A stretch of DNA of 64,000 bases from Selaginella moellendorffii (Eukaryota; Plantae; Lycopodiophyta): the NCBI RefSeq assembly GCF_000143415.4, contig NW_003314302.1, positions 1,203,921-1,267,920 on the forward strand. Reading direction: 5' to 3'. Below are positions 2,803 to 63,243 of the stretch, piece after piece. Position 1 is the stretch's first letter, and each line of letters starts with the position of its first letter. The notes under the pieces were generated by a model. The model did no database searches, was not told the origin of the DNA, and saw nothing but the letters and a program-made list of their open reading frames with translations. Made by a program: the position numbers and the translations under genes.

Positions 2803-4746
2803 GAAAGGCGCGCATTCTTTGCGACCAATGGCGTCGCTGCTACCACAGGCGCTTCTCATTCGACTGTTAGCATCACACTTGTCGGGGAGTCCGGTGATCT
2901 TGCAAAGAAGAAGATATTTCCAGTCCTCTTTGCATTGTTCTACGAGGGCCATCTTCCCCAGGTAAGAACGAATCCATCTTTTTTACTTTCACAAGGCTTT
3001 GTGGCTACGCCAGGAGCAAGATGACCGAAGAGTTGCCATTGAAATCAGTGGCAATCTAACTTGCCGGACCGATAGAAGGTTTGCGTGAAGTGTTTATCTA
3101 AAACGACTTGTTTTTTTTTCTTTCCTACAGTGAAAACTGTGGAGACAAGATGGAGGAATTCTTGAAACGCTGCTTCTATCACCCTGGCCAGTACGACTGG
3201 CTTGAGAATTTCGCTCAACTACATGAAAAGCTCAAAGGCCACGAGGTATCTAGTTTTTTCGTGCTGTTACAACTTACCAGGATTACAACTTATTCTCTGT
3301 TTTCTTTTTCTTTGCTGCAGCAAGGAAGAATTGCACACCGCTTGTTCTACTTATCAGTTCCTCCCAATGTCTTCGTGGCCGCAGCAAAGTGTGGCAGTCT
3401 TGCTGCCTCATCGTCAACAGGATCGACTCGTGTGATTGTGGAGAAGCCATGATTCGGAATCTAGCGCACAGCTAACAAGTGGACTTAAGCAGTACTTGAA
3501 TGAAGATCAAATATATCGTAAGAAGGTATTTCTCTTACTTGGCTTGATAGTCTCTTCTTTTTTCGTACAGCATCGATCACTATCTTGGAAAGGAACTTGT
3601 TGAAAATCTCTCGGTTCTCCGGTTCTCCAATCTGGTGTTTGAACCTCTGTGGTCGAGAAAATACATTCGAAACGTGCAGATTGTTTTCGCTGAGGACTTT
3701 GGTACCGAAGGACGAGGAGGGTGTGTAGGCTTCACACATCTTTTCTGTTTGTAAAACGACTTAACATTTCTTCCAGGTACTTTGATCGCTACGGCATCAT
3801 TCGAGACATCATGCAAAACCACTTACTCCAGATTGTAGCCCTGTTTGCAATGGAGCCTCCAGTAAGCTTAGATGCGGAAGACGTGAGAAACGAAAAAGTA
3901 AGCTAAACTTTTGCCTCGGTATGAAGAGATTTTACTCGTTTTCTCCAGGTAAAAGTTGTAAGGTCTATGAGGCCTCTAAGTATCGAAGATACTGCTGTTG
4001 GTCAGTACAAAGGTTACTCCAAAGACGGTGTGAGATTCCCCGGCTACACAGACGATTCCACCGTGCCCAAGAACAGAATCACTCCGACATTTGCAGCGGC
4101 AGCTCTCTTCATAGACAATGCTCGTTGGGATGGCATGCCATTTCTTATGAAAGCCGGAAAAGCTTTGCAAACCAGACGGTACGTAAAATTGCTGCATTCT
4201 GGATTCCGCAAAGTTTCATATTTTGTTTCGTGTGTGGTTCACAGGACCGAGATTCGAGTTCAGTTTAGACACGTCCCTGGAAATCTTTTCAAGTGGAACC
4301 TCGGTATTCTTTTCAAGCGGAATTCGGTACGGAATTAGACAAAGCCACAAATGAGCGAGTGATTCGAGTCCAGCCAGACGAAGCCATTTATCTCAAGATC
4401 AACAACAAAGTCCCAGGGCTGGGAATGAGACTCGATCGAAGCACTCTGGACCTCCTCTACGCAGACAGGTAGAACGAGCTAACAGTTTATTCTTTTTTAC
4501 GAGCTAAAGTTCCTATGTAACAGATACTCGAAAGAAATCCCTGATGCTTACGAGCGATTGCTGCTGGATGCCATCGCTGGAGAGCGCCGTCTCTTCGTCA
4601 GGAGCAATGAACTGGACGCGGCGTGGAAGATTTTCACTCCTCTTCTCAAAGATCTCGAGAGAAAGAAGACGGCGCCCGAGTTATACCCGTACGGAAGCCG
4701 GGGTCCCGTGGGAGCTCACTATCTCGCGACCAAGCACAACGTGAAG
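2803..4746 (+). pseudogene. G6PD: Plastidic glucose-6-phosphate dehydrogenase pseudogene with short introns
   Basis: Exons encode [38 protein letters not shown] (plastid redox Cys pair), [46 protein letters not shown] and [11 protein letters not shown]. Lesions: frameshift near 3040, deletion in EKPFGRD at 3450 giving TGA, duplication with frameshift at 4284-4330, no transit-peptide exon, truncated C-terminus. Confidence 0.93.
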
Positions 4747-5574
4747 TGTAGAAAAGCGCTAATTTTGAAATATTCAAATTTGGAGATCCAACGTGGATGC
4801 AATGTAAAGACCACTTCCCAGACCAGCGCGGCCGTTTGGCAATGGCGATCAATGCTAGGGCAGGGGGAGCTTTGATTGGAAGTTCGCTTGGAGAATTTTG
4901 CTTGCCATGGCATTAGATTAGTCAGAGGAAAGGTTGTTTCTTCGAAAGAGAGGCGAATGATACAGATGCTGACGAGATTGAAGAGCATGGTTTGGGACTT
5001 TGGTAATTATCCTCAAAGATTCACAGAGGTTTTGGGGTCTGGATAGTGAACATTGTACATTAGTGGAATATAGTGGAGTTAGTGGATATTCAATGGATTT
5101 CCCACAGGTTTTTACACAAGAGGTTAGTGACTGTTGTAGAAGTCAAGAAGTTGTTTCAGGATTTGCTGACCAAGGTATAAAGTTCAGAAGTGTATGTGTT
5201 TGATGTCTTGATAAGTCCTCTTGCTAAAAATTTCTTGAATTGGTCAAATGAAGATGTAATGAAATAAATAAAGCTTTATTGCAGAAGTAATACTATAAAT
5301 AAAGATGTTTTGATCATGAATTTAAGGCATAATTTAAATTTTATTATGATGGTTTTCTTGATGGTAAGAATAAGTGGAAATTTCTCTCAGCAAATATAAA
5401 TTTTTTTCTAACACACTTCCCAAACTTGAATTTATCTATGGAACTTTGCTAATATCTTGTTTTAGTTGTTTTCTCCCACATTAATAATGACATATATAAA
5501 AGTTAGTACTGAAGAACAAAAGCCACTCTAAAGTTTTGGATTGCCACTATTAACAGTGTTATTATTTATATAAC

Positions 5575-6630: not shown

Positions 6631-7463
6631 AAATCTGTATAAATACTTTTTGTTATATAATAAAATTTATATAAATCAACGATTATTATTTATATTTTAA
6701 TGGATGAAAACTTCCAAAGTTATTTAGCAATAGTCCATACACATAAACATATGATCAAATAGATCAATAAAATATTAATAAATTTTTTCTCTGTATTATT
6801 ACGAGAAAAAAAAAATTTAGCTTAAATTTTTATTTGCTTAAGAAAACATATAGAGGGTCTGGAGTGGTAATGGTTATACCTAGAATATACTTGGATATTC
6901 TACAATATTCTAAAATCTAGTGATTGTTATTCATTTAACTTAATCTTGTATTAATAATTTATAAACTATTTTAAACACTTTCTAATATATTCTAGTTTCT
7001 TCTACTATCTAATAGAGCATTGGCAGGCCTCAGTCATCTACTATGATAACTTGCACAACAGCCACCACAAGGTAATTGCTGTGCAAGCTAAGCTCCTATA
7101 GAGAGTTGGTGCTAGTGGGGGCTTAATTTGAGGAGTTGGCTCGAGCCATTTAAGTCAATCACTGTCTCTTTGATTCACTTGCCTACTGACAGAAGTGTAG
7201 GGGCAAGCCACTTTGTTGGCTTCCATCTAACAAACTCTCAAATACAATCATTAGAAGAACACCTAAGCCAATTGACCAAATGATATAGTTTTCAATATTG
7301 TAACTTCAAAACTTTTGCTCATTGCTAATAATCTAGGGATAAAAAAGGGCATAATAATATTCTAATAAAGAAACATAGAACATCATAAGTAATCCCATGA
7401 ATGGTGGAAAATTGAGTTACCATAAAGGTGTAAAGAAAAAACTCAATATAAATAACTAAAGAG

Positions 7464-8973
7464 TGTAATCTATAATTTTTTCCTTTCCAATTTGAGAACT
7501 TACTTGGTCTATTTAACCAGCTTTGCTTTGGCTTCAATTAAGTTCCCTTGCGAAGGTTTCCACTTATGTATTAACTTCTATTTGGTCTTACTTGGATCTA
7601 ACTACTCACTACATGAACAATGAAGTGTTATCCATCTATGTATAGATTTTTAAATTCCCTTCCAATCCTTTTTCCCAAGTTAGGCTAGACTTAAGGTTTG
7701 GATACACTACCTATAGGCACAAGTAGCCAAATATATCAAGCCTCCAAGTTCTTAACATTTTTTAATACAACAAAACTTGATTATACGACATTTTAAATCC
7801 CAAGCTTTAAATGCATCTTTTACTTCGAGACCCTAGCGGGAAACACCGTGGCCTAATAGCTTAATATGGGTACCTTTACTCCCCCACTCTTGTCCTAAAG
7901 GGAAGGCATAAGCCTCTAAGAAGGAGCGAGGACCAATAAGCTATATAATACTTAAGTGGGCCACCACTCTAGATGAGGTAAGAGCATTGTAGTAGATTTC
8001 CTTTCTAAGAGTGGGAGCTATTGTTAAGCATTTTCTTGTGTGGCCTCTTTGGCACCTCCCAAGTCTATGCTCACTCCCATTTAAGGCTACTAACCCCTAA
8101 TCCCAACCCCAATTCGGTTTGGAAGAACCATTGAAGCATTCCTTCAAAATTGGGTCTTGGACCTTATTATCCCTATTATACTTTTGAAAAGCCCTACTAC
8201 CCCTTGCCCCCACCCCCCATAGAGACGATTGCTTTGGGCTTTCACCCCATAACTTGTATTAGTATTTGGACTTGGTTTCAGACTCGATCTTGGACTTGGT
8301 CTTCAACTCGATCTCAAACTCAATCTTGGACCCAATTTTGGATCTCAGACTCGGTCTTGAACTCAATCTTAGACTCAATTTCAAATTTGGCCTCATTTGA
8401 TGAGCTCTTTATCATTTCAACTTAAGACACCTTAAAGAGTTGGTTCCATACAACTCCACCACCTATAGATGAAATTTGATGCCCATATCAAATGTATCTA
8501 TTTAATCTTATGACTTGTTGACCATGCTTTAGGGGCATCCCCCCATTTAGCGATGTGCTTAAGTCAACCTCCTCAACTAAGAACCCATGATAACAAGATA
8601 TAGGTGTTTTTATACATATCCCTTCACCTCGCCCTCGTAGAGGGTTGGGACTTGAACCTAGCCTTGCTTTACTAAGGGGTTGGGACTTGAACCCAACCTT
8701 TGTAAAATACATCTATAGATTTGACATCCCTTGGAGAGTCGAGTGTAGCTCTCTATGCTTAGTTGACCTTGTTGAACCCATACTAATTAGTTTATCTTTG
8801 GTGTGCCTTCTAATCTTAACATATGTCATTCCTCAATTTTATAAATGAATACTTTAATTAAACTTTGCATAAGTACATAAAGTTTTACTTTGCAAAAATT
8901 TCTCTACTATCTTTTAAGTGTTTGCTAAGTTTTCCTCCAGTTCCCATATTGCTTCATAGAGTGGAAATCCTTT
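7464..8973 (-). mobile_element. Old truncated family A chromovirus: chromodomain remnant, 3' UTR, PPT (8453-8463) and 3' LTR (7464-8452)
   Basis: Reverse complement aligns with 26290-27945. Confidence 0.85.
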
Positions 8974-11498
8974 CTTCATGGGTTGCCTCCATTATGAGGT
9001 GTGGAGTATGGGATTATATTAGAGCCGAGGACACGGCTAATTTACCAGCGTCCATTTTGGTTAAGTTATGTGGAGGAGCAAGAAGTCCAACGACAAGTTA
9101 AAGAGTTACTTGAGTTTGGATTTATTTAGCCAAGTAAGTCTCCATTTGGTGCTCTAGTTTTGCTTGTGAAAAAGGATGACTCAATATGGATGTGTATTGA
9201 CTATCGTGCCTTGAACAAAAAGACAGTGAAGGATAAAATGCTGATGCCGCGTGTGGATGATATCTTATATAAGTTTGGTGAAGCACGAGTGTTTACCAAG
9301 ATTGATCTAAGTAGTGGATATTATCAGATTGCAATGGATGATGCATTTATCTCCAAGACAGCATTCAACACAAATTTCAGATATTTTGAGTTTACAGTTA
9401 TGCCGTTTGGTTTGACAAATGTATCAGCCACATTTACTTGGTTGATGATGGAGATGTTTAGGTGTTATCTTCATGAGTTTATAGAGATTTTCTTGGACGA
9501 TATTTTTGTTTTCAGCAAGAATATGGAGGAGCATAAAGTGCATTTGTGCAAGGTATTTTTGTTACTTTATGACAACAAACTTTATGCGAAGAAGAGCAAA
9601 TGTGAGTTTACAAAGTCAGAGGTGGAATATCTAGGCCATATTATGACATTTAAGGGTGTCAAGATGGATCCAAGGAAGGTGGTTGCAGTGGAGAATTAGC
9701 CTACATCAACTTTAGTGGTCGAGTTACACAGCTTTCTTGGTATGGCTAATTACTACCAATGTTTCCAACATAAGTTTGTGGAGGTGGCTATTCTTTTGAC
9801 ACGATTGTTACACAAGAATGTATCATTCAAATGGAAGAAGCCACAAAAGGAGAGTTTGTGGTGTTGAAACGATTGTTGAGCAAGACTCCAGTGCTTCGTA
9901 TTGTTGATCCATCAAAACATTATAAGGTGATATGCGATGCGAGTGGTTATGCACTAGGAGGAGTTCTCATGTAAGAGGGATAGCCTATTGCATATGAGAG
10001 TCAAAATTTGAATCTTGTAGAACAACACTATTCCACATATGAGCAGGAGTTACTCTTTATTATTCATGTTTTGCGGACATGGCAACACTATTTTTATGGT
10101 GTAGTGTTCGTGGTGTTGATGGATCATAAATCACTTGTGTATTTTTTCACACAAAAGGATATGAGTTGATTAAGTGCAAAGGCTGATATCCTTGAGTATT
10201 GTAAATCATGCGAGCTTTGTCAGCAAGTAAAGGTGCCACGAGAGAAGCTGGGGGGACTTTTGCAACCTTTACCTATTCCTTAGAGCTATTGGTGTAGTAT
10301 CTCTATGGACTTCATTACTTGTTTGCTATAAACACAAAGGCAAAAGGAGCAAGTATAAGCTATAGTGGATCGTTTGACGAAGTATGTGCAGTTGTTGGCT
10401 CTTCCGAAGATTATCATTGCCTCAGACTTGGCTATAGTCTACTTGGAGAAGGTTTTTCCTAATTTTGGTTTGCCAGAGGATATCATTAATGATTGAGATT
10501 CAAAGTTTACAAGTGGATTTTGGAAGAGCAATGGACCAAATGGAAGCCCCTTTCTCATTGGTGGATGGGATTCTCTACTATAATGGTTGTGTATATTTGC
10601 CACGAGTGGAAGTGTTAATTACTCAAGTTTATTCCACTATCATGACCATCCAGAGGCTGATCATTTTGGGGGGAAGAAGACATATGAGTTGATTAAGTGC
10701 AATTTTTATTGGAGGAATATGAAAGCTGATATCCTTGAGTATTGTAAATCATGCGAGCTTTGTCAGCGGGTTAAGGTGCTACAAAAGAAGCTAAGGGCAG
10801 TTTTGCAACTTTTATCTATTCCTCAAAGTCATTAGTGTAGTATCTCTATGGACTTCATCACTTGTTTGCCATGAACACAGAGGCAAAAGGAGTAAGTATA
10901 GGTCATAGTGGATCAATTGATGAAGTATTTATGGTTGTTGGCTCTTTAGAAGACTGTCACTGCACCAAACTTAGTTGCAATCTACTTGGAGAAGGTTTTT
11001 TTTTTTTTTTTTTGATTTTTGTTTACCGGAGAACATCATTAGTGATCGAGATTCAAAGTTCACAAATGGATTTTGGAAGAGTTTTGTGAAGGCTATACAA
11101 GTGACTTTGAAACTCTTGAGTGGAGATCATCTTTAGACAGATGGGCAAACCAAGCATGTGAATCAGGTGGTGCAGGATATGCTACATTGTAGCATTGGCC
11201 AAATGCAAGGACAGTGGGATTTAGGTGTTACATTTAAGTAAGGATATTCAAGATAAGCTTGATTCTGAAGCGACTGATCTAGCCATAGAACTTCATGAGA
11301 TTCTGGTGGTGTGCAAATGGAATTTGTAGGTAGCTCAGGATAGAGTGAAGAAGTTTGGTAATGAGCATTGCCAATTCCGGGAATATAAAGTGGGTGATCT
11401 CATCTTCATATGAGTGATCTTTTCATCAAGTGAGCAGTAGAACACCTTAGTGCCTTTACGGATAGGGAAGAGTGATAAAATTTCCCATCGATATGCTA
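8974..11498 (+). pseudogene. Family E Gypsy pol remnant (RT, RNase H, integrase with internal duplication), inverted relative to its gag
   Basis: MCIDYRALN, KIDLSSGYYQI, VMPFGLTN, FLDDIFVFS (9160-9699); YHDHPEADHFGGKKT and CKSCELCQ. Segment 10160-10525 is repeated at 10683-11075. Confidence 0.9.
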
Positions 11499-13655: not shown

Positions 13656-16600
13656 CAACACTCTCCATATGTTAATATTTCTTGTGTCCACTACAGATAT
13701 CATATCAAACACCTCACTTAAGAGGAGTTCTGTGATGAAATTTATCATAAGACATTTTCATGGATGATTGGGGATTGGGAGGCTTTGAAAGAAACCCCCA
13801 CTATCTTTCATTACGACCTTCACCTATTGATATGTTAAGGATGTCTTTACATAGTCTTGAACATTTTTATCTATGTTTGGCTAGTGATACTTTCTTTTGA
13901 GTAAGCCTATTGTTTTGGGCATTTTGTTGTGTCCTATTAAAGGTATATAAAAGATTAATTTTTCCATTTTATTTTAGTCACTTAACCATGCTTTGGACCT
14001 CTTGAAGAAGTCTCACTCACAACCTCTATAGATCCTTATCTGCCTTGGGATATTTGCCTACCCCTAGATATGATCTCAAGACCATATCAGCTTCGTATTG
14101 AGTCCAAGTGCTCTATGTGTTCAATTTCACTCCTAACAGCCCAAAGATACCATTAACATTTTAGTATATTACACTAAGGTTATATCCATTTACCCTTGTT
14201 TCATTGGTAATCCAAGACCACCCACAATATGGTTCTATCTCTTTGACACTAAGCCATCTATCCATGAGTGATCATTTCATGACTACACCTTAACATTTTC
14301 AGGATGCCCCAAGATACGGGGAATACCATCCCCCAATATCCTTCCTTTAGTCCCTATCAAGTCCCTCTATTTATGACAGTGCTTGCTAACACCACCACTA
14401 GTTTAGGGCCCAAAGGCCTATCCACTAAGCCTCATTCACCTTTGGGACTTTCTTACCACATAACCTTACCCTTGGTCACCAAGCAAGAGGACGATTCTTT
14501 TTTCTTTCCATGGTCCGAGACTTTGGGATAAGATTTCAAAACATTGCAGCCTAGTATAAGTTTCATGTGTAATCCTCCCACCTTTCACCACTAGGGTGTT
14601 GCAGCCATATGGCTAGAGTGACGTTCCGATAAGCCATGCAAGGTATCTAAGTAAATAGTGCCACCCACACTTGGATTGGGAGTATTGACCATCTGATTTC
14701 CCAGAGGAGCTAGAGCTAACTTTGGAACACCTCACCAAGTTACCCATTTGTTCATCCATGTCGGTTTCAGGCTTTATTACAAACTCCATCTTGGGCTCCA
14801 TCTCAGGTTCCATCTCAAGCTCCATCTTTGACTCTATTTCAGACTTCTTTTCGGACTCGATCTTGACACTTTTATGTGTCATAACACTTGTCATGTGTTG
14901 GTCCTTCTTGTGTCCTTTTCTAGATACTCACTTATTAATCACTTCATATTTATTCCTTAAGTATTTCATTGGGAGTTCTACTTTTGCTCTTGACTTTCTG
15001 AGCTAAAGCTTTTTATCCAAATATATTACACTCATTGAATCTTCACTTTTGGCCACTACTATATAGCACACTTTCAAACCGACATTAAGGCTTAGAGATT
15101 TGTGTTTCACAACACCACCACCCATAAATGAATTTTGATATTATCATCGAATGATAAACTATTTTCTGAAGTAACCCCTATCATAGATTACCATTTCTAT
15201 CTTTTGCACTAAACAATTATTCATCAATGGTTTAACACCGAAGGGAAATCATGCCTTGCATGTCCTTGATGAAGTATAGACCCTCCAACTTAGGGACTTA
15301 TTAAATCCTTTATTTTGGTCTTCTCACTTTGTTGGATTAGATCCTACTAAACCCCCTAGAGACACCTTCTCTATCTCAATCTTACTATTCATTCTAGAGT
15401 AGTTTCAAACCATATCATTATAACCATCACCTTTTTGGAACTTTAATATTGCGGAACCTAAACCCTCTATGTGCCACGTGTCATATGCCACATGTCCAAA
15501 AGATAGTGGTGTGGAACCTCGAGTTTCAGAGCCTTGGGCCATTGATGTCAAACTCCTAAGCATGGAGTCAAGGAGTGACAGAACAGAACCATGGAGTAGC
15601 TCCCGAGCATATAGCCAAAAGAGCAAAGGGTAAGGAGCATGGAGTGACTTGGAACAGTCCTAGAGCAACCAGTATCCCAATGCCAGGACCAACATGCAAA
15701 ACGGAGCTAAACAGAGTCTGGCACTATTTCAACATACCAGTGCCTTAACATGAGGGTATAGGTACTCCACTAGCTAGCATGGTGTGGAACTTGGGCTTAG
15801 ACCCAAGCCAAATGCAAAACAAAAACAGGCACGCAAGCAAAAGTTAGATTATGCCTTAGGTTGGTCAGCCATACCCAACCTACCCACTATCCCTATTATA
15901 CATTTGGAACTCCCTATAGCCCCTCCCTCCCCTTTGAAGAACACACACTTTAGGCTTTGACCTAGTATCAGGAGTTAGTCTCTAGGACAAACTTGAAACT
16001 TACTAAATATGGAATGTCCTTAGATTGTGAATTTAGACACGGGATAAACACTATTGTGTTCAGGACAATCTCTACATTCCATAAATATGCTAAATAAGAA
16101 AATCTAGACACTTTTCATAAATAGCATTTGAAACCGAAATGAGACTAACACAAAGGGCATGATAGTGAGGGTGTTTGGCAGACACAGTAAGCTATCATTT
16201 AGCAATATTGAGGGATCAAACTCAATATTGCGGGGGTTCTTGACACTAGCAAGTGCAAGCTAATGACAAACCAAGCTAAGTATACTCAACAAGAAACACA
16301 TAGAGTTCTTACCTTATGTTTATCCAATTTAAGTGCATGTTTATTGACCAGTTTCTCAACTAGCTCAAGTGGGAATTGATAACGGGTCCAATAATACTGA
16401 CCTTCTACCGTCATGGTAGTAAGGAAAGAATATCTGAAAGGACTAGCTGACATATAAATTTTGATACCCGAAGTCACATTCACAACACTCTCCCCCCCTT
16501 AGGGAAGATCGACGTCTACCGGCAAGGAAACAACTCTAGAAAAAATTCACGGTGATCATACTATGTGAGAAATGCACCAACCCTAAATGAGTTAGGGTAA

Positions 16601-19600: not shown

Positions 19601-22600
19601 AGCAATGCCCATGTTATTACTTTAAATGTTTATGTGAATATCAAGTGCTAACTCGATTTGATAAAATGCAACATAAATGCCACACTCCACTGATAGAGAT
19701 TTACAACACCCAATACTAGTAACTTTTGTTCACAATACGGACAAGCTCATGCCACTCTCTTTCTGACCAAACTCAAAACTAATCTAACACCAAGCTATTC
19801 AAAGAGCAATAGCAAAGTTCCCCGGAAAAAGAATTGAGCATTGTCTTCAATAGCAAGTCTAAACAAAATGGTATAACACTTTATGGTTATCCATTCCACA
19901 ACTCACCACTTGCAAAATTATCACTTCCAACATGCATCAAAGTAGGGACTCTTGATTGCATGATATGAATATGAGCAATGAATTAACATCTCATTGCAAA
20001 TCATCTCTCCAAGAAGAGAAGATAATTTATGTGTTTGATCTTTCGTCCCTGACAACTCTCTTTTCAGTCTCATCTTTGACCAAACCTCAAGCTTGCTTTC
20101 GCACTGCCTTTAGTCCAATCCAAGAAAAGTTTATGAGAGAGCATGGCAATGACTACTTGAACTAATGGACTATAATCTTGATTGGTTCACTTATAATCAT
20201 GCCTAGAAAAGATCCACTAGTGCCATGCTAAACAGCTATAGACTAGCTTATTTGCCACTCATAGCAAACCCAAGGGAGGTTTACTTTTACCTGGTAACCA
20301 TTGATAGGACAACATTAATCCTACCAACTCAAATTGTAACCTCGAGTTGTTAATGTACCTCACTTATGAGCCCAAGTGCAAACTCGTGCAAATGGAACAA
20401 CTCAGTCCATCCTATGAGCTCAATATAAGGAACCGACTCCCTGAGATATTGTAGGCTAAAGGATCCCCGAAAGCATGACCGAAATGACAAAAAGTTCATC
20501 GGATGGGACCGAGTCGAAGATCGAGTCCAAGACCGACTCTGAGACCAAGTTCGAGATAGAGTTCAGGATCGAGCCCGAGGCCAAATCGGAGACCGAGTTC
20601 AAGATCAAGTTCGAGACAGTGTCCGAGATCCAAATCGGGTCTGAGACCGAGTCCGAGGTCGAGTCCGACATCAAGTCTGAGATCGGGTCCGAGATCGAGT
20701 TCGAGATCGAGTCCGAGACCGAGTCCGAAGTCAAGTCCGAGATCGAGTCCGAGTCCGAGATCGAGTTCAAGACTGAGTCCAAATACTAATACGGGTCAAG
20801 GGGTGAAAGCCCAAAGCATGTGTCTCCCAGGGCGGGGGGGGCGGGCTGCAGGGGGTTCCAAAAGTATAGTAGGGATAGTGAGGTCTAGGAACCAGTCTTG
20901 ACGGAACTCTCCAGTGGTGCTTCCAAACCGACTTGAGGTTAAGACTGGGGCTGAGGGGCCTTGGGTGGGAGTGAGCATGGGCTTGGGTGGTGCCGAAGGG
21001 GCCACCTAGGGAAGTGCTCAAGAGCAACTCCCACTCCTGAAAGGGAAACTGACTGCGGTGCTCCCGACTCATGTGGAGTGGTGCCCCATTTGAATACCTT
21101 GTGGCTTATTGGTCCTCGCCCTTCCTAGGGGCTTGGGCCTTCCCTTCGGGATAGAAGTGGGGGGCGTAGAGGTACCCATACTGGGCCGTTAGGCCATGGT
21201 GTTTCGCCCCGATGTCCCGAAGCAAGTGTTGCACCCAAGACTTGGGATTTAGAGGGTCCCATGATCAAGTCTTGTTGTACCAAGGGGTGTTAGGAACCTG
21301 GAGGCTTGGTGTGCTTGGCTACTTGTGCCTATGGGGAGTGTAGCCAAACCTTAAGTCCAGTCTAACCCGGGGAGGGGGATTAAGAGGGATTTGGGAATCC
21401 GTGGATGGATGGCTAATGCTTCGTTGTTCGTGCAATGAGTAGTTGAAACTAAGTAGGACCAAGTAGGAGCTGGTACAATAGGTGGGAACCTTGGCAAGGG
21501 AACTTAGCACAAGCCAAGGTAGTGTTGGTCGGATAGACGAGGTAAGCTGGCAAATTGGAAAGGAAAAATTTGTGGTTTACAATTTGGTATTGGAGCCTTT
21601 TCCTCAATTCTAGCGAAGGATAGAGGCAGATTGCTGGGAGATGGCAAAGGCAAGGCGGAAACGAACCAAGGCGGAGATGGAACCTCCTCCAGAGCTAGAG
21701 CCTCCGGTCGAACAAGAGGCTATGGTTGAGGAATCCTTGCATGAGGAGGACTCTAGTGAGGAAACTTCCAAACAGGAGTCCGGTGGTGAGGTTCGGTCGT
21801 CCAAAGCTTGATTGGACATTCTAGAAGGACAATTAGCACAAACCAATGCCCTGCTAGAGACTCTCATACACAAGTTAAAGTGTGACGAGAAGCGGAAGAA
21901 AAAGCGAAAGACTGCGGATGCTGGCAGCGCAGAGGGTGCGGACCCTTTGGTAGGGACTGAGGCAGAACTAAACAAGGTCGAACAAACCGAAGTGGAATCA
22001 GTCCCTCAGGTAGTTCCCAAGCACAAACCAAAGCCCCCACCGGTCTTCAAGGGAGTGAATGATTATAAGGTGGTGGAGGATTGGTTTTACAATATGGAGG
22101 ACTATTTCCGAGCGTTGCGGTTACCAAGCTCGGAAAAGGTCCCATGTGCAAAACCATACTTGGTAGATAATGCCAAGTCTTGGTGGAGAACGACAGAGGC
22201 CAACGAAGGACCGGTGGCCACTTGGGAAATGATGAAGGCGAGGATCCGTGCGACTTACATTCCTCCGAATGCTACTCTGCATCTAAGGGACGAGCTAAGT
22301 AGGCTGAAGAAAACCGGAACCATTCAGGAGTATGTAAATGGGTTTATGGCAAAGAGGATACTTGTCATGGATATGGGAGATATGGATGCGTTCCATGCCT
22401 TCATATTAGGTTTGCAAACCTGGGCTCGTGGTGAGGTGATGCGTTGGAACCCAACCAACTACAAGGAAGTGTTGGATGTGGCCATCAAGGTGCATTTCAA
22501 TGATAACCTGCGAAAGGGGTACACGATGGGGTTGGGGTCCACGTTTAGCAAAGGGGTCAAACCAAGGGGAACGTATAGCAGAGGGAAATTCAAGAAGAGT

Positions 22601-25513
22601 TTCTCTAAGAATGAGTCCTTGGGGTTCCGGAAAGGCAAATTCGGCGGCCAGCGAGCAAATACGTGGGGGAGTCAAGCAAAAAGAGACACACCTACAGATA
22701 AGAAGGTCAAGTCGTATAGTAGCATGGGAAACAACGTATGCTACAATTGCGGTGAAGTGGGACACTTTTCGAGGGAATGTCCTTACCTGAAGAAAGCTAG
22801 AGCCAATATGGCCATCAAGTCGGGTGAAGTCCAAATTGAGGTATATGATCCAGTCCCTAACTCAAAGTTACTCATTACATGAGAAACTTTGGTAGAGAGT
22901 CGTTCGCGACATCTACTAGCCCTCCGAGGGAAGCTCGGAGGTAGCTTTGTTAAGATCCTTATTGACACGGGTGCTTCAGATAATTTTGTGGCTGCAAACA
23001 TAGTCTGGCAAGCCGGACTAATGGTGTAGCGGCTAGGTGAACCAAGGACTATAGAGTTTGTTCAAGGTAGCCAAAGCACCGATGAGGTACTTCGACAAGC
23101 AAGAGTCGAAGTAGGGATATGGAAAATAGACATGGATGTCACCATGTTGGACATGGCGGGATTTGATGTGATCTTCGGAATGGATTGGTTCAATTGGTTC
23201 GTGGTAGCCGTGCATGGACAAGGTAGAAACCTTGTGGTACTAACAAATGCCCAAGGAAGAAGATCTAGGGTGGAGGCCCAGGATCTAAAGGTAGGGCAAA
23301 GCAAGGCCAAAGATTCCCACTTAAACCTGGTTTCCACGAGAGGACAACTCACTAAAGTAACTAAGGCAGTGTTTTTGTGCTTACTCTCGGTGAAGAGTGA
23401 TAAAAAGACAGGAATGGAAGAAGTACCTTTAGTGATCTAGCGGGTGTTAGACCAATTCCAGGATACCATGCCAGAGGAGCTACCAGCGGGGTTGCCCCCC
23501 GCACGACTGATAGAATATAAGATTGAGCTGGTTGAGGGTGCTGAGGTGGTGGTTCGTCCCCCTTATCATTTGAACGAAAAAGAACTCGAGGAGCTCAAGC
23601 ACCAACTAAAGGAGTTGGTGGACAAAGGGTATGTTAGGTTGATCAAGTTGTCGTATGGGGCGCCAGTGTTATTTGTGAAAAAGAAAGATGGATCTATGCG
23701 CATGTGCATAGACTACCGGTTGCTCAACAAGTATACAAAGAAGAATAAGTACCTTTTGCCAAGGATTGAGGACCTGTTCGATAGGTTGGGAAAGGCAAAA
23801 TAGTTTTTGAGGATTGACTTGAGGTCAGGATACTACTAGAACAGGGTAGCAGAGGAAGATGTCGAGAAGACAACCTGTCTAACCAGGTATGGGAGCTTTG
23901 AGTTTCTGGTGATGCCCTTTGGGCTGTGCAATGCACCGGCAACTTTTTTGGCGTTGATGAACCATATCTTTGTACCCTATTTGGATCACTTTGTGGTTGT
24001 CTATATCGATGACATCTTGATCTATAGCGAGACACTAGAGGAGCATGCCGAACACTTGGCGAAGGTGTTTGAGAAACTAAGGAACACAAACTATATGCTA
24101 AAGAGAGCAAATGTGACTTTGCTCAACAAGAGGTAAAGTTTCTCAGGCATGTGGTGGGCCAAGACGGACTCAAGGTGGACCCGGAGAAGGTCCAAGCGAT
24201 CCAGGAATGGGAGCGACCATCGAATGTACATGAGTTGAGGGCGTTCTTGGGGCTATGCAACTACTACCGAAAGTTTATCAAACACTATTCGAGAGTAGCC
24301 CTGCCCTTAACGGACCAAACAGGAAAAGGGAAGATGGTATGGACAGCGGAATGCGAAGCGGCATTCATCCACCTCAAAGGGAAGTTGAGGACGGCTCCCA
24401 TGTTGGCATTACCAAACTTTGGTAAGGACTTTGAGGTAGAAATGGATGCTTCAGACTTTGCGCTGGGTGCAGTTTTGAAGCAAGACAACCATCCAGTAGC
24501 GTTCTTCTTGAAGAAGTTGGACAAGGCTCAACAAAAGTGGCCTGCCCACGAGAAGGAATTGTTTGCAGTGGTCAAGGCACTCAAGGAGTGGCGACACTAC
24601 CTTGGGAGACACTTCAAGGTTTACACGAACAATGTAGCAACGAAACACTTTTTGTCACAGCCCGACCTGAGAGGGAAATAGGGTCAGTGGGCCAATGCCT
24701 TGGCCGAGTTTGATTGTGAGATTCTGTACAAGCCCGGGAAGAGCAACATTGTGGCGGATGCGCTAAGTCGAAAAGCGAGCTTGAGGTTGGCGATATCCAG
24801 CATAACAGCAACCTTTTGGGACGATGTGTGGACAGCATATAAGAACGATGGTCTAGCACAAGAAGTGTTGCTGAGGAATCTAGAGGCACGGGAAGCTCAC
24901 CAGAGAGGTGAGCTGCCAACGGAAGAGAAAACGGGCTATGCGGAACGCAACGGACTCATCTATTACAAGCAAACGAGGGTGTATGTTCCAGAAGGGGAAC
25001 TAAGGAAGGTAGCCTTAGAAGAGTGTCATGACGGACCTCTTGCGGGACACGGCGGAGTGCCCAAGACGATGGGCTTACTCAAGAGGAAGTACCATTGGCC
25101 AGATATGGCTAAGGAAGTCCAAGACTATGTAAAGACATGTCCAACATGTCAGCAGGTCAAAGCCGTGACTAAGGCTAGTGGGGGCTTGTTGCAAAGCATC
25201 CCAATTCCAGATCGCCCGTGGAAATGTCTTACAATGGACTTCATCACGGGACTCCCCCCAAGCGAGGGGTTTGATGCGATATTCGTGGTGGTGGACCGAT
25301 TTTCAAAAATGGCACATTTCATACCCACCACAACGGAAGTGGATGCGGAAGGTGTGGCGAAGTTGTTCTTCGAACAAGTGGTTCAAGTGCGGGGAAGGCC
25401 GGAAGAGATCATCTTAGATCGAGATAAGATCTTCACTAGTAGGTTCTGGAGGACTCTCTTGGAACAGTATCGCACCAATTTAAAATTCAGCACAGTCTAT
25501 CACCCACAGATAG

Positions 25514-25560
25514 GTATTGGGTATTAAGTCAAGTTTGATGGCACTAACACTTCTTGACAG
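25514..25560 (+). other. Putative 47-nt spliceosomal intron in the integrase core
   Basis: GTATTG...CACTAAC...TTCTTGACAG. Removal gives HPQIDGQTERVNRQLEDYLRCYV in frame. Confidence 0.8.
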
Positions 25561-25978
25561 ACGGACAAACGGAAAGGGTGAATAGGCAGTTGGAGGATTA
25601 TTTGCGATGCTATGTCTCGGGAGACCAGACCGATTGGGTAAGTCATTTGGGACTTGCAGAAATGTGTTATAACAACTCACCACATTCGAGTATCGGGGTG
25701 AGTCCATAGGAAGTCATCAATGGGTGAGCTATTGAAGGTCTTGTGGAACTCGGCGTGCCCGAGTATCATGGAGAGTTACCCGCAGTGGAGGCATTCACGG
25801 CGGAAATATTCAGCATTTGGAATCTAGTGAGGGATTCCTTGGAACGGGCTCAACAAAGGCAAACCAAGTACGCGAACCAGAAGCACCGGGATGTAGAGTT
25901 CCAAGCTGGGGAGAAGGTGTGGCTGAACACCAAGAACCTCAAGCTACCAAGTGGGATCAGACAGAAGTTGACCCAAAG

Positions 25979-26030
25979 GTAAAAATGCATATATTCCTGT
26001 AAATGAATTGATCTTGAGTTCCTTAAGCAA
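25979..26030 (+). other. Putative 52-nt intron in the integrase GPY/F region (acceptor reads CAA; alternative AG ends at 26027)
   Basis: AG|GTAAAA donor and AT-rich body. Removal gives KLTQRFAGLYEI; using the AG at 26027 gives KLTQSKFAG, also in frame. Confidence 0.65.
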
Positions 26031-26505
26031 GTTCGCGGGGCTTTACGAGATTGAGGCACGAATCGGTAAAGTGGCTTACCATCTCTGACTTCCTCGAGAG
26101 ATGGGGAAGATGCACCTAGTGTTCCACGTGAATTTACTCAAGCCGTACTTTGAGGATCCGCTTTGCAAGGACCAAGTAAGACCTTTACTTGAGGTTATCC
26201 AAGGGGAAAAGGAATACAAAGTCGAGGCCATCCTCAATGCGCGCAAGAGCAAGTGACAAGGACGCAAGGTGAGAGAGTTCCATGTGAAGTGGAAAGGATT
26301 TCCACACTGCGAAGAAACATGGGAACTGGAGGAGAACTTAGCGAATGCGCGAGATCTAGTGGAGGAATTTCTGCAAGGCAGAACTCTATGTACTTATACA
26401 AAGTTCAATTAAAATATCAATTTGTGAAGTTGAGCAATGGCATATGTTGGGACCCGAAGGCGCGCCGAAGGTAAGCTAATTAGCATGGGTTAGCTAGGTC
26501 GACCA

Positions 26506-26625
26506 GGCATAGGGCACTACGCCCGACTCCCCATGGGGATGTCAAATCCGTAGACGTATTCTACGGAGGTTGGGTTCGAGTCCCAACCCCCTAGTAAAGC
26601 AAGGATGGGTTCAAGTCCCGACCCC
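26506..26625 (+). other. Structured 3' UTR element: hairpin chain with two T-loop-like hairpins
   Basis: tccgtaga/tctacgga stem; GGTTGGG-TTCGAGT-CCCAACC; GGG-TTCAAGT-CCC. Homologues at 8640-8765, 30405-30520 and 59099-59205 (all minus). Confidence 0.55.
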
Positions 26626-29600
26626 ATACTAGGGCGTGGTGAGGTGAGGGGTATAGGGACACCTATATTCCGTTGTCATGGGCTCTTGGCCGGGGAGGCT
26701 AACTTAGGCACACCGCTAAGTGGGGGGATGCCCCCGGAGACATCGTCAACAAGTCGTAGGATCAAAAGAGATGTTCGATGTGGGCATCAAACTTCTTCTA
26801 TGGGTGGTGGAGTTGTAAGGAACCGACTCCCCGAGATGTTGTAGGCTAAAGGATCCCCGAAAGCATGACCGAAATGACAAAGTGTTCATCAGATGGGACC
26901 GAGTCGAAGATCAAGTCCAAGACCGACTTTGAGACCGAGTTCAAGATAGAGTCCGGGATCGAGCCCGAGGCCGAATTGGAGATCGAGTTCGAGACAGTGT
27001 CCGAGATCCAAATCAGGTCCAAGACCGAGTCCGAGGTTGAGTCCGAAGTCGAGTCCGAGATGGGGTCCGAGATCGAGTTTGAGATCGAGTCCAAGACCGA
27101 GTCTGAAGTTGGGTCCGAGATCGAGTTCGAGATCAAGTCCGAGACCGAGTCCGAATACTAATACGAGTCAAGGGGTGAAAGCCCAAAGCATGTGTCTCCC
27201 AGCGGGGGGGGTGTAGGGGGTTCCAAAAGTATAGTAGGGATAGTGAGGTCCAAGAACTAATCTTGAAGGAACTCTCCAGTGGTGCTTCCAAACCGACTTG
27301 AGGTTGAAATTGGCGCTGATGGGCCTTGGGTGGGAGTGAGCATGGGCTTGGGTGGTGCCGAAGGGGCCACCCAGGGAAGTGCTCAAGAGCAGCTCCCACT
27401 CTCGAAATGGAAACCAATTGCGGTGCTCCCGGCTCATGTGGAGTGGTGCCCCACTTGAGTACCTTGTGGCTCATTGGTTCTCGCCCTTAATAGGGGCTTG
27501 GGCCTTCCCTTCGGGATGGAAGTGGGGGGGTAGAGGTACCCATACCGGGCTGTTAGGCCATAGTATTTCACCCTAATGTCCCGAAGCAAGTGTTGCACCC
27601 AAGGCTTGGGATTTAGAGGGTCCCATGATCAAGTCTTGTTGTACCAAGGGGTGTTAGGAACTTAAAGGCTTGGTGTGCTTGGCTACTTGTGCTTGCAGAG
27701 AGTGTAGCCGAACCTTAAGTCCAGTCTAACCCGGGGAGGGGGATTGGGAGGGATTTGGGAATCCGTGGATGGATGGCTAACGCTCCATTGCTCATGTAGT
27801 GAGTAGCTGAAACCAAGTAGGACTAAGTAGGAGCTGGTACAATAGGCGGGAGCCTTGGCGAGGGAACTTAGCACAAGCCAAGGCAGTGTTAGTCGGATAG
27901 ACGAAGTAAGCTGGCAAATTGGAAAGGAAATATTTGTGGCTTACACCCAAAAGCAAGCTCACATAATACGGTACAACAAGGTAACCAAACCCATACCCAA
28001 GGAACCATTGCAAAGCCTTTGCACCCAAATGTGTACCCACTTGGATTATTGTTTTCATCTCTGCATATATAATGAGACTAGTTGCCCAATCTCATTAGAT
28101 AGTACTCACTGAGACTCATCCTTTGATACGAAATGTAGCGCACATGGTTTTTACCCTTTATCCTATGGTGATTTACCATAGGATAACCATGGAATGGAAC
28201 CTAAACCCTCCATATGCCATGTGTCATATGCCATGTGTCAAATGCCATGTGTCTAAAGAACAGTGGTGTGGAACCCAAGTTTCAGGGCCTTGGGCCACTA
28301 AACGAAGGAACAGTGCCAAACTCCTAAGCATGGAGCCAAGGAGTGACAGAACCAGACCATGGAGCAACTCTAGAGTGTACAGCCTAAGGAGCAAAGGGAC
28401 AGGAGCATGGAGCGACTTGGAACAGTCCTAGAGCAACCAACATCCTAATGCCAAGACCAGTATGCAAAATGGAGCCAAACGGAGTCTAGCACTATTTTAG
28501 CATACCGGTGGCCTAACACAAGGGCATAAGTATTCCACCAGTTAGCATGGTGTGGAACTTAGGCTTAGACCCAAGCCAGATGCAAAACAAGGATAGACAC
28601 ACAAACGAGAGTTAGACTACGCCTCAGGTTGGTCGGCCATGCCCAACCTACCCACTATCCCTACTATACATTTAGAACCCCCCATAGCCCCTCCCCCGCC
28701 CCCCACCCCTCAACCCCCTCCCCCTCTTGAGGAATACACGCTTTGGGCTTTCACCCCAAGCCTCCCTTAGTATTAGGAGTTAGTCTCTAGGACAAGCTCG
28801 AAACTTACTAAATATGGAATGTTCTTAGATTGCAAATTTGGACACAAGATGAACACCATTGTGTTCAGAACAATCTCTACATTCCGTAGATATGCCAAAT
28901 GAGCAAATCTAGACACTTTCCATAAATAGTTTTTGAGACTGAAATGAGACTAACACAAAGGGCATGATAGCGAGGGTGTTTGGCAGATACAGTAAGCTAT
29001 TATCTAGCAATATTTAGGGACCAAGCTCAATATTGTGGGGGTTCTTGACACTAGCAAGTGCAAGCCAATGACACAAGTTTCTCAAACTATGCCAAGTATG
29101 CTCAACAAGAAATACATAGGGTTCCTACCTTATGTTTATCCAATTTAAGTGCATGTTCATTGACCAGTTTCTCAACTAGCTCAAGTGGGAATTGATAACG
29201 GGTCCAGCAATATCGACCTTCTATTGTCATGGCAGTAAGAAAAGAATATCCTAAAGGACTAGCCGACAAGTAACTTTCGATACCTAAAGTCACATTCACG
29301 ACAAATATTAATTTTTTGAGTCAATTGCTTAGGTGTTTCTGACACCTTGTATTGCACATGTTGTGCAAACTCCACTTCCTCATCTTATGAAGTTTTATAT
29401 TAGAGGGCACTATTATCCCCTCTTTTATCTTATACCACCCTAGGCATTAAGTTCCACTTATTCATAATTTGTGCTAAAGTTGTCCATGACTTGGCTATCT
29501 TGTTACTCCATTTATTTGAGTTTTCACTTTTTACTAAATTTGAGCATTTGGTAATCCTATCATGGGAAATATATTTCCTTTTTCACAATCCATTAGCATC

Positions 29601-43277: not shown

Positions 43278-43377
43278 NNNNNNNNNNNNNNNNNNNNNNN
43301 NNNNNNNNNNNNNNNNNNNNNNNNNNNNNNNNNNNNNNNNNNNNNNNNNNNNNNNNNNNNNNNNNNNNNNNNNNNNN
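43278..43377. other. Assembly gap (100 N)
   Basis: Run of N. Confidence 1.
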
Positions 43378-56600: not shown

Positions 56601-56844
56601 AACTAGAGCCGGCTCTTGAACACTTCACCAAGCTACCCCGCTTGTCGGTCCGTATTCACTCTAGTCTTGGACTTCCCAGTGGTCAGTTCATCACCCAACA
56701 CTGGGTCTGGCCTTCCTGGGCCAAACTGGCCTTTCCTGGCCAAACTGGCTCCACTGCAGTCCTCCCCCTACTATACTTTTGGAGCTCACCAAACCCCCCA
56801 GGGTCTGGGAGACGAACGCTTTGGGCTTTCACCCTCTCAGGCTC

Positions 56845-57405
56845 CAGACTCGGACTCGGACTCGGACTCGGACTCGGACTCGGATTCGGACTCGGACTCG
56901 GGCTCGGGCTCGGTCTTGGCCTCGGCCTCGGTCTCGGTCTCGGTCCCGATCTCGGTCTCGGTCTCGGTCTCGGTCCCGGTCTCGGTTCCGGTCTCGGTCT
57001 CGACTTCGGACTCCATCTCGGACTCCATCTCGGACTCCATCTCGGACTCCATCTCAGGTCCATCTCGGGTCCATCTCGGACTCCATCTCGGACTCCATCT
57101 CGGGTCCATCTCGGACTCCATCTCGGACTCCATTTCGGGTCTATCTCGGGTCCACCTCGGACTCCATCTCGGACTCCATCTCGGGTCCATCTCGGACTCC
57201 ATTTCGGGTCCATCTCGGGTCCACCTCGGACTCCATCTCGGACTCCATCTCGGACTCCATCTCGGGTCCATCTCGGACTCCACTTTGGACTCCAACTCGG
57301 GTCCATCTCGGGTCCACCTCGGACTTCATCTCGGACTCCATCTCGGACTCCATCTCGGGTCCATCTTGGACTCCATCTCGGACTCCATCTCGAGTCCATC
57401 TCGGA
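56845..57405. repeat. 6/12-bp tandem array (CTCGGA, CTCGGT, CTCCATCTCGGA) in the family C LTR
   Basis: Directly visible. Confidence 0.95.
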
Positions 57406-60400: not shown

Positions 60401-62669
60401 GTTTAACCAGTTATTTTGCACCTCTTGCTTAGTTGCCTCATGGTTGTCAAGTCCTACAACTCATTGCTTGGTGCTTGCACACCTCCATCATTATCTGGGT
60501 CACCGCACTCCAATTGCATGCTCTGCCGCTTAGGCTATGCCATTCCCATTCCAATTGGGATTTCTTTGGCAAGGGGTTCTCATGAACCCACCAACATAGC
60601 CTCAAGGTATCACACCTTGGCACATTTGGTGTCTCCACACCATCAGCTCCACGAGCCTACCTCTATGACACTTCCCCTTCGTGTTTAAGTCTTTGCCAAG
60701 ACCAACACCGCTCTTTCTCATGCCAACCATCCGTTAGCACTACACTATAGAGGTCACACACAACTTTGTGTCAAAGTTGTTTTCTTCTGGGAACACCTTT
60801 CCCATAACTTTAGCATGGCATATTTTGCCATCGATGAGATACCCTCCGTTCTCATCCTTGGATCCTATGATCCCCCCCCATCCTTTGTGGGGTACAACAC
60901 ACCTCAGTCCAAATGCTTCCATCAGTCCTTTTAGGACCATCCGTTGACTCTACTTGAGTCATCTAGCAGTTTTGGACTTGGTTAATCCACAGACCCGTAA
61001 GGTTCTACTTGTGAGGCACTAGCTCACTGGAATACACTTCTTGCATTCCTGTCCTACTCAAAAGGACTATTTTCACAAGTGTTACTCCGACACTTGATTT
61101 TGTTCTCTGGGGGCAACCTTTGCCTCTTAGGACTACTTGTCCATGTGATGAGAACACCAACTCATCCACTTAATACACCCCCAACTCCTGGGGTTGTTCC
61201 AGCATTTATTAGAGGTAGCCGAGGCTACCTTTTCAAGGACTTGAGTCCTCTTCCGTATTTGACCTCCCACGGTCATTACTTCTGGTCTCACATTCATGAG
61301 CACCAACCTCAACTATATGAGGAAAATCTTGTGACTCCTTTATTGCTTTGGAGTCTTTATCTTTCCCGTGATCCCAACTGTAATTGTTTACCACAACTAC
61401 ATTAGCCAGTTTGCTAAGTCAAACGCTCATCTGGATCACATCCTCAACTCTTTGAGGAAAACCATATACTGTTCCCAAGATCCCAAAGTCGTTCCATTAT
61501 TGGCCCTTTTCTATCCACCACCTCGTCTACAAGTTCACACATGAACTGTAATGGAGAGCCATGTCTTCCCGACTTGCTACTCCTCAAGGATAGGCCCACT
61601 CCTTGGACCTTCCGATGCCAACACTAGTGGTGATATACTTGAGCACCAATAAAAGTCAGACTAAGGAACAGCTCCGATACCAAATTGTAAGCGACTAAAT
61701 TTTCCATTCTACTTTAGTCACTTAACCACACCTCCGACCACTTGGAGGAGTCTCATTCACAACCTCCATCAATCCAATTCAGGACTTGGGACTTGCTAGC
61801 CCCAAGAATGGCATCCATGCCACTCCACACTTGCACCTGGTCCAAGTGCTCCACGTGTCCGGCCCTGAGACCGACACCCAAAGGTACCACTGACATCTCG
61901 GCCCGTTACGCTAAGGCCATGCCCATTCACCTTTGCTGCACTAGTGGTTCAACACCACTTGCATCACCACCTCGTCTCTCCAAGACTGGGCCATGTGTCC
62001 ACGAGGGGTCATCCTAGATCCACTCCTTAGCATCCTTAGGATGCCCACAGACCTGGGGAATTGCCTTCCCCAAAGTCCCTTTGTCAGTTCCTACCAAGTC
62101 CCTTTCTGCCCCTGGCCGTGTTTGCCAACACTGCCACTGGATCGAGGCCCACAGGCCCGACCCCTAAGTCCCACGGTCCTCTGGGACTTCCTCACCATAT
62201 GACTGTGTCCTTGGTCACTACCCCAGAGGACTGCTCCTCTTCCTTTCCACAGTCTGGGCCTTTGGGACAACATTTCGGAACACCGTGGCCTTACGCGAGC
62301 CACCTGGGTACTCTCCCCACCTATCGCCTTTAGGTGCTCTAGCCATGGGCTTAGAGCGAGGTTCCGTTGAGCCACGCCTGGTATCCAAGTAGGTAGTGCC
62401 ACCCACACTTGGACTGGGAGCATCGGCCAGTCGATCTCCCGGGGGAACTAGAGCCGGCTCTTGAACACTTCACCAAGCTACCCCGCTTGTCAGTCCGTAT
62501 TCACTCTAGTCTTGGACTTCCCAGTGGTCAGTTCATCACCCAACACTGGGTCTGGCCTTCCTGGGCCAAACTGGCTCCACTACAGTCCTCCCCCTACTAT
62601 ACTTTTGGAGCTCACCAAACCCCCCAGGGTCTGGGAGACGAACGCTTTGGGCTTTCACCCTCTCAGGCT

Positions 62670-63243
62670 CCAGACTCGGACTCGGACTTGGACTCGGACT
62701 CGGACTCGGACTCGGACTCGGATTCGGACTCGGACTCGGGCTCGGGCTCGGTCTTGGCCTCGGCCTCGGTCTCGGTCTCGGTCTCGGTCCCGGTCTCGGT
62801 TCCGGTCTCGGTCTCGACTTCGGACTCCATCTCGGACTCCATCTCGGACTCCATCTCGGACTCCATCTCGGACTCCATCTCGGGTCCATCTCGGGTCCAT
62901 CTCGGACTCCATCTCGGACTCCATCTCGGGTCCATCTCGGACTCCATCTCGGACTCCATTTCGGGTCCATCTCGGGTCCACCTCGGACTCCATCTCGGAC
63001 TCCATCTCAGACTCCATCTCGGGTCCATCTCGGACTCCATTTCGGGTCCATCTCGGGTCCACCTCGGACTCCATCTCGGACTCCATCTCGGACTCCATCT
63101 CGGGTCCATCTCGGACTCCACTTTGGACTCCAACTCGGGTCCATCTCGGGTCCACCTCAGACTTCATTTCGGACTCCATCTTGGACTCCATCTCGGGTCC
63201 ATCTTGGACTCCATCTCGGACTCCATCTCGAGTCCATCTCGGA
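62670..63243. repeat. 6/12-bp tandem array in the other family C LTR
   Basis: Directly visible; unit counts differ from 56845-57405. Confidence 0.95.

Follow-up and report, generated by a model that had tools for sequence, protein, structure and literature searches.

Two intron-like inserts within the integrase of a high-copy chromovirus, most likely SM1-Galahad, of Selaginella moellendorffii

The window analysed here, a stretch of 64,000 nucleotides of the Selaginella moellendorffii genome (contig NW_003314302.1), contains a complete but dead LTR retrotransposon of 7,522 bp at positions 20424-27945 of the forward strand. The encoded domains are arranged as gag(CCHC)-PR-RT-RNH-IN-chromodomain. 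The element is bordered by a target site duplication whose left copy, CTCAA (20419-20423), matches the right copy in the flank sequence, CCCAA (27946-27950), at four of five positions, the difference being one transition. The 5' LTR (20424-21581, 1158 bp) starts with TA, mutated from TG, ends with CA and includes 12-nt tandem repeats as well as a poly-G tract. The 3' LTR (26814-27945, 1132 bp) has TG...CA ends, and the purine-rich tract GGGTGGTGGAG lies upstream of it. Three nucleotides past the 5' LTR is a primer-binding site of the tRNA-Met type, TGGTATTGGAGCC (21585-21597), which we take to match the 3' end of this tRNA. The two LTRs are 90.9% identical (K2P 0.099; 91 transitions and 12 transversions), which at commonly used plant rates, assumed here and possibly not those of this lineage, would date the insertion to a few million years ago. 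Imperfect arrays of a 12-nt repeat (GAGTCCGAGATC-like) are found in both LTRs at 20447-20834 and 26861-27212, with the poly-G tract coming after them. They read SEIEFEIE... in one frame, and similar repeats are located at about 56800-57400 and 62600-63200. The window also has a 100-N assembly gap at 43278-43377.

The coding region can be laid out as three exons on the plus strand, separated by two intron-like inserts of 47 and 49 nt. Exon 1 (21641-25513) extends from gag with its CCHC knuckle through protease, RT and RNase H into integrase, of which it encodes the zinc finger and the core as far as HPQI. Several stops and the loss of one nucleotide after 24080 mark this exon as decayed; its Pfam matches are Integrase_H2C2 (1.6e-21) and rve (5e-11, full model, ending at the junction). 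Exon 2 (25561-25978) continues the integrase core from DGQTER to KLTQ and has point stops at 25707 and 25725. Exon 3 (26028-26412) completes the GPY/F (SH3-like) region and adds the chromodomain (Pfam Chromo, 1.5e-11; SH3_Tf2-1, weak), with point stops at 26086 and 26254 and the final TAA at 26410-26412. The G missing after 24080 causes a frameshift in RT/RNase H of this copy; an extra G at this place is present in 25 DNA contigs of the family (a minority, about 4% of depth) and in a further contig, X20. Many family contigs diverge just past 24082, which suggests subfamily variation there.

The first insert, with the full sequence GTATTGGGTATTAAGTCAAGTTTGATGGCACTAACACTTCTTGACAG, occupies 25514-25560. 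It begins with GTATTG, includes CACTAAC, with the CTAAC motif about 14 nt upstream of the 3' end, and terminates in CTTCTTGACAG, the acceptor side being GACAG. When it is retained, ...KFSTVYHPQI reads on into GIGY and then meets an in-frame TAA at 25525-25527; past the insert, reading resumes one frame over (DGQTERVNRQLEDYL). Joining 25513 to 25561 gives CAG ATA G/AC GGA CAA ACG GAA, translated as Q I D G Q T E R V, and rebuilds the canonical gypsy-integrase motif HPQxDGQTE (HPQI/DGQTER). The codon split by the insert is followed, four codons on, by the catalytic Glu (the E of D,D35E), and exactly 35 residues lie between the first D of LDRDKIF and this Glu. The first-pass annotation had described a 47-nt GT...CACTAAC...CAG insert that splits HPQxDGQTE shortly before the DDE glutamate, restores the frame when removed and introduces a TAA stop when kept, all of which is borne out by the sequence and its translation. 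Continuity across the insert is not seen in the Pfam matches, the rve model itself ending at the junction.

The second insert (25979-26027) interrupts this integrase again, 418 nt further downstream. Its borders are AAAG/GTAAAAATGC...GTTCCTTAAG/CAAG (AG/GTAAAA...CCTTAAG/), and a TAA follows at once when it is retained (25980-25982). Its removal joins KLTQ-S-KFAGLYEIEARIGKVAYHL (KLTQ-S-KFAGLYEIE), that is, the GPY/F (SH3-like) region ahead of the chromodomain. A branch-like motif, TTGAT, is found about 16 nt from its 3' end. Both inserts are poor in GC (38% and 29% for inserts 1 and 2, respectively) and rich in T (34% and 37%) compared with the flanking exons (47-50% GC, 21-24% T).

We passed the 5.2-kb internal region through a crude intron filter (GT..AG, 40-90 nt, GC at most 40%, T at least 30%, YTRAY near the 3' end), which picked four places, inserts 1 and 2 among them. 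A match inside the RT motif YIDD was discarded as an obvious false positive. The filter also picked a candidate third intron-like stretch at 22841-22883 (or to 22895), GAG/GTATATG...CCCTAAC...ACATGAG/, which lies directly 3' of the gag CCHC knuckle and 5' of the protease DTG. Removal of its 43 or 55 nt would shift the frame, with a stop 3-7 codons on. A splice at 22841, if it takes place, would thus yield an mRNA for Gag alone, comparable to those of BARE1 and copia.

Both inserts thus combine GT/AG ends, a branch-like motif, U-richness, a length in the range of host introns and restoration of the frame; insert 1, as far as its letters tell, bears every hallmark expected of a host-type U2 intron. 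By our own estimate, GT plus AG would occur in a pure insertion with a chance of about 1/256 for each insert and about 1.5e-5 for both. For the host, the window offers a small sample, a G6PDH-like gene at 2890-4800 whose exon spacers measure 41-81 nt, with one exact intron of 51 nt (GTAAGC...CTCCAG, 3898-3948); the closeness in size of insert 1 to these introns, pointed out earlier, holds. This gene has tiny introns and apparent frame breaks within exons, one near ISGNLTCR and another, a stop plus frame shift, at VIVEKP-stop-FG / DSESSAQ. It may be a pseudogene or contain sequence errors.

With regard to the origin of the inserts, a 4-bp flank duplication left by intron gain had been proposed for insert 1 by the first-pass annotation. 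A perfect duplication is not what we found: ATAG/...ACAG/ matches at three of four positions, and two of the four bases are forced by the AG/GT...AG/ consensus. Had base 25511 been C at first, encoding the common HPQT, the flanks would form the repeat GACAG...GACAG. The flanks of insert 2 are AAG/...AAG/, with two bases likewise forced by the splice consensus. These repeats argue only weakly for intron gain, with chance values of about 1/64 (insert 1, if 25511 was C) and 1/4 (insert 2). Nothing in the window points to a mobile intron of the introner type: insert 1 occurs once in the 64-kb window, insert 2 has no other copy there either, and the two are mutually unrelated.

To identify the family, we compared the element by its anatomy with a published description. 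It is most likely SM1-Galahad, a retrotransposon of S. moellendorffii of about 7.5 kb whose LTRs (1076/1146 bp, 90.2% identity) have TG..CA ends and poly-G tracts and are associated with a 13-bp tRNA-Met primer-binding site (PMC3350952). Hundreds of copies that are about 95% alike were reported for it, and none was found intact (PMC3350952). In the consensus, ORF1 measures 3885 bp (1295 aa) and terminates in the core Int; two short ORFs come next, one of 316 bp and one of 309 bp, and it is the latter that contains the chromodomain (PMC3350952). Counted from the ATG at 21641 through the TAA in insert 1, the present copy has 3887 nt; restoring the missing G brings this to 3888 nt, which corresponds to 1295 codons plus stop. 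The ATG at 25662 opens a frame of 321 nt, stop included, that closes at the TAA in insert 2, and the one at 26101 opens a frame of 312 nt, stop included, that extends to the final TAA and covers the chromodomain. The likeness thus includes the size of about 7.5 kb, LTRs of more than 1 kb with corresponding ends, poly-G in both LTRs and about 90% identity, the tRNA-Met primer-binding site and the three-ORF layout with a 1295-codon ORF1 and a chromodomain in the last ORF. Since its ORFs end and start where the inserts predict, the published SM1-Galahad consensus seems to carry both inserts. The original paper, in which the word 'intron' has 0 occurrences, reads the ORF breaks as the lack of an intact copy (PMC3350952). 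The two inserts would create this three-ORF layout. The related SM2-Galahad is intact, with one ORF of 4731 bp (PMC3350952).

Logan contigs from one DNA run were placed on the internal region of the element. The 55,489 pieces have a summed depth of about 800,000, so the family is very abundant. A 208-nt DNA contig that is 12% diverged from this copy covers 25483-25684 ungapped, and a 614-nt contig, obtained in another run and differing by 6%, extends over 25375-25983, again ungapped. Insert 1 is therefore present in other, diverged copies. A third contig covers the region of insert 2 (25932-26163) with three gaps somewhere along its length. Among the best-supported DNA joints listed (depths 170-470), none removes 25514-25560; Logan contigs lose rare variants and the counting of joints is incomplete, so an insert-less DNA form of the family is at best very rare. 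The insert is not private to one decayed copy: diverged contigs span it ungapped, and the published consensus ORF1 ends inside it. These two lines, which are partial evidence, indicate an intron that is kept family-wide, as in the Ogre elements discussed below.

Other elements lack insert 1. Among the gypsy elements of the window, element D (about 55670) reads HPQTDG-stop-TKHVN and element E (about 33980 and about 11130) reads EHP-stop-MDGQTEHVN and DHL-stop-TDGQTKHVN, without an insert at the homologous site, confirming the earlier observation. Of 270 database protein relatives, all with at most 55% identity, 153 are uninterrupted through HPQxDGQTE at the site of insert 1. Given the uninterrupted state of the other gypsy families in the window, of these 153 relatives and of the single-ORF SM2-Galahad, the inserts are a derived trait of the SM1 lineage. 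Several relatives terminate at HPQTDG, which likely reflects decay of CAA/CAG to a stop or the end of a contig and not a shared intron.

Relatives of more than 55% identity were found neither in a homology search with the 271-aa ORF nor in an exhaustive search of representative proteins, and an exact-product look-up of the protein gave no match; the family is absent from the protein collections searched. Metagenome contigs and viral contigs were likewise without a match to a 38-nt pattern, tolerant of transitions, that represents the end of exon 1. The window contains two further fragments of related chromoviruses on the minus strand, at 7463-8974 and 13680-13943. One holds a chromodomain, 3' region and LTR (73-79% nucleotide identity), the other an N-terminal piece of integrase (61% amino acid identity); neither includes the region that would hold the insert sites. 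About 4.7 kb lie between them, with a plus-strand gypsy element (10185-11130) within, an arrangement that looks like a nested insertion plus a deletion.

At the RNA level, two RNA-seq runs, about 12% of each being read, yielded 12 and 1 reads that mapped at a likeness of at least 85%. No splice joint reached the listing threshold among these 12 + 1 reads, and the binned depths around both inserts are equally compatible with spliced and unspliced reads. X20, which is the sole long contig from a run guessed to be RNA, retains insert 1. Since this copy is dead, its own splice signals carry no weight as evidence of function.

What are these inserts? We consider it probable that the family has two genuine U2-type introns in its integrase, with integrase being made from spliced RNA only and copying proceeding from unspliced RNA. 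It is hardly credible that insert 1 is the private debris of a single decayed copy, or an assembly artefact. This copy is indeed full of stops and has a frameshift, but contigs from independent runs, representing diverged copies, carry the insert ungapped, which rules such an origin out, and the published consensus ORFs end where both inserts predict. A rather improbable explanation is that the inserts are unspliced, disabling insertions inherited from a master copy, so that an integrase-defective family would be mobilised in trans, e.g. by SM2-Galahad. Non-autonomous high-copy LTR families are common, and the 12 + 1 mapped RNA reads hold no junction, both of which count for this explanation. 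The lack of any intact SM1-Galahad copy and the one long ORF of SM2-Galahad fit it as well (PMC3350952). It would, however, leave to chance, at about 1e-5, that both inserts have GT...AG ends, host-intron length and U-richness and that the removal of each restores frame and motif exactly.

Alternatively, the introns could be spliced and the spliced RNA be packageable, their persistence being due to inefficient splicing, with rare intronless copies remaining unsampled. LTR elements can copy spliced RNA, as learnt from the yeast Ty intron experiment (PMC12786077), and rare intronless copies might hide among the variants that Logan contigs lose or among 72 weaker joints beyond those listed. On the other hand, no 47-nt skip is seen among the best-supported joints listed at a summed depth of about 800,000, and an autonomous intronless copy should spread, yet the three-ORF layout persists in the consensus, which represents hundreds of copies. 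We regard this possibility as unlikely.

Under the preferred reading, that of two genuine introns, the unspliced full-length transcript would be the template for reverse transcription, since the DNA copies keep the introns. This RNA would encode Gag-PR-RT-RNH and a stump of integrase. The stump would comprise the zinc finger and the two Asp residues and stop short of the catalytic Glu, so that GPY/F region and chromodomain are missing as well. Only RNA spliced at both introns would give the full polyprotein and a complete integrase with GPY/F region and chromodomain, and splicing would set the integrase dose. Since we see no evidence of a form that lacks the insert, spliced RNA probably does not enter particles or is seldom copied. 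Splicing itself and the keeping of spliced RNA out of particles are what we infer from the DNA. A more far-reaching version, which we put forward tentatively and hold to be somewhat doubtful, is that SM1-Galahad has an obligate split life cycle, in which active integrase comes from doubly spliced mRNA only and spliced RNA is actively barred from packaging or reverse transcription. If this holds, two introns of 47-49 nt would have come through hundreds of rounds of retrotransposition spanning millions of years. Should the Gag-only splice at 22841 be real as well, the stoichiometry Gag : RT : IN would be set entirely by host splicing.

A similar strategy has been demonstrated experimentally for the intron of Ogre elements. 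This intron separates the PROT ORF from the RT ORF, and its removal from part of the transcripts allows the rest of the polyprotein to be translated (PMC6317226); genomic copies keep it (PMC6317226, PMC12786077). The Selaginella element shares with Ogre an intron within the polyprotein coding region that is kept in genomic copies. In contrast to Ogre, a Ty3/gypsy element of legumes from the Tat/Ogre group with its intron at PROT/RT, we are dealing with a lycophyte chromovirus and introns within the integrase. These are two and tiny (47 and 49 nt), one of them within the D,D35E spacer; RT would need no splicing and integrase alone would be gated. The chromodomain makes the element a chromovirus, and this, together with the location of the introns inside integrase, places it outside Tat/Ogre. 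By analogy, it is best read as a new variant of the Ogre strategy, one that would work like Ogre without being an Ogre.

Other LTR elements use splicing differently. In copia (Drosophila), BARE1 (barley) and EVADE (Arabidopsis), which are Ty1/copia elements, the ratio of the proteins depends on how the RNA of the element is alternatively spliced (PMC3735527, PMC12786077), and BARE has separate RNA pools for translation and replication (PMC3735527). A protein ratio adjusted by splicing and replication from an unspliced RNA pool would be common to these elements and ours. In copia, BARE1 and EVADE, however, pol is spliced out or frameshifted so that the mRNA encodes Gag alone, and all proteins are encoded by unspliced RNA, whereas the unspliced RNA of the element described here cannot encode an active integrase. 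Penelope-like elements are retroelements that likewise retain spliceosomal introns in genomic copies, but they represent another class without LTRs and integrase and with another mechanism of keeping introns (PMC4209133). Ogre and EVADE are the only intron-bearing plant LTR elements named in a 2025 review (PMC12786077). The literature that we searched, with incomplete coverage, yielded no report of introns inside the integrase of an LTR element, in agreement with the earlier remark that the known splicing cases lie elsewhere.

In textbooks, LTR retrotransposons serve as proof that introns are removed when an element passes through RNA. The present window adds a copy that is old, with a divergence of 9% between its LTRs, and already has both introns; the fit of its ORFs to the published consensus is nearly base-exact. 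ORF-based pipelines will call such intron-bearing families dead. If our reading is true, the published view of SM1-Galahad as a family without an intact copy would need correction, and this high-copy chromovirus would represent a third type of exception in plants, mechanistically distinct from Ogre and EVADE. It would also raise a testable question, namely how the element separates the RNA that is translated from the RNA that is copied.
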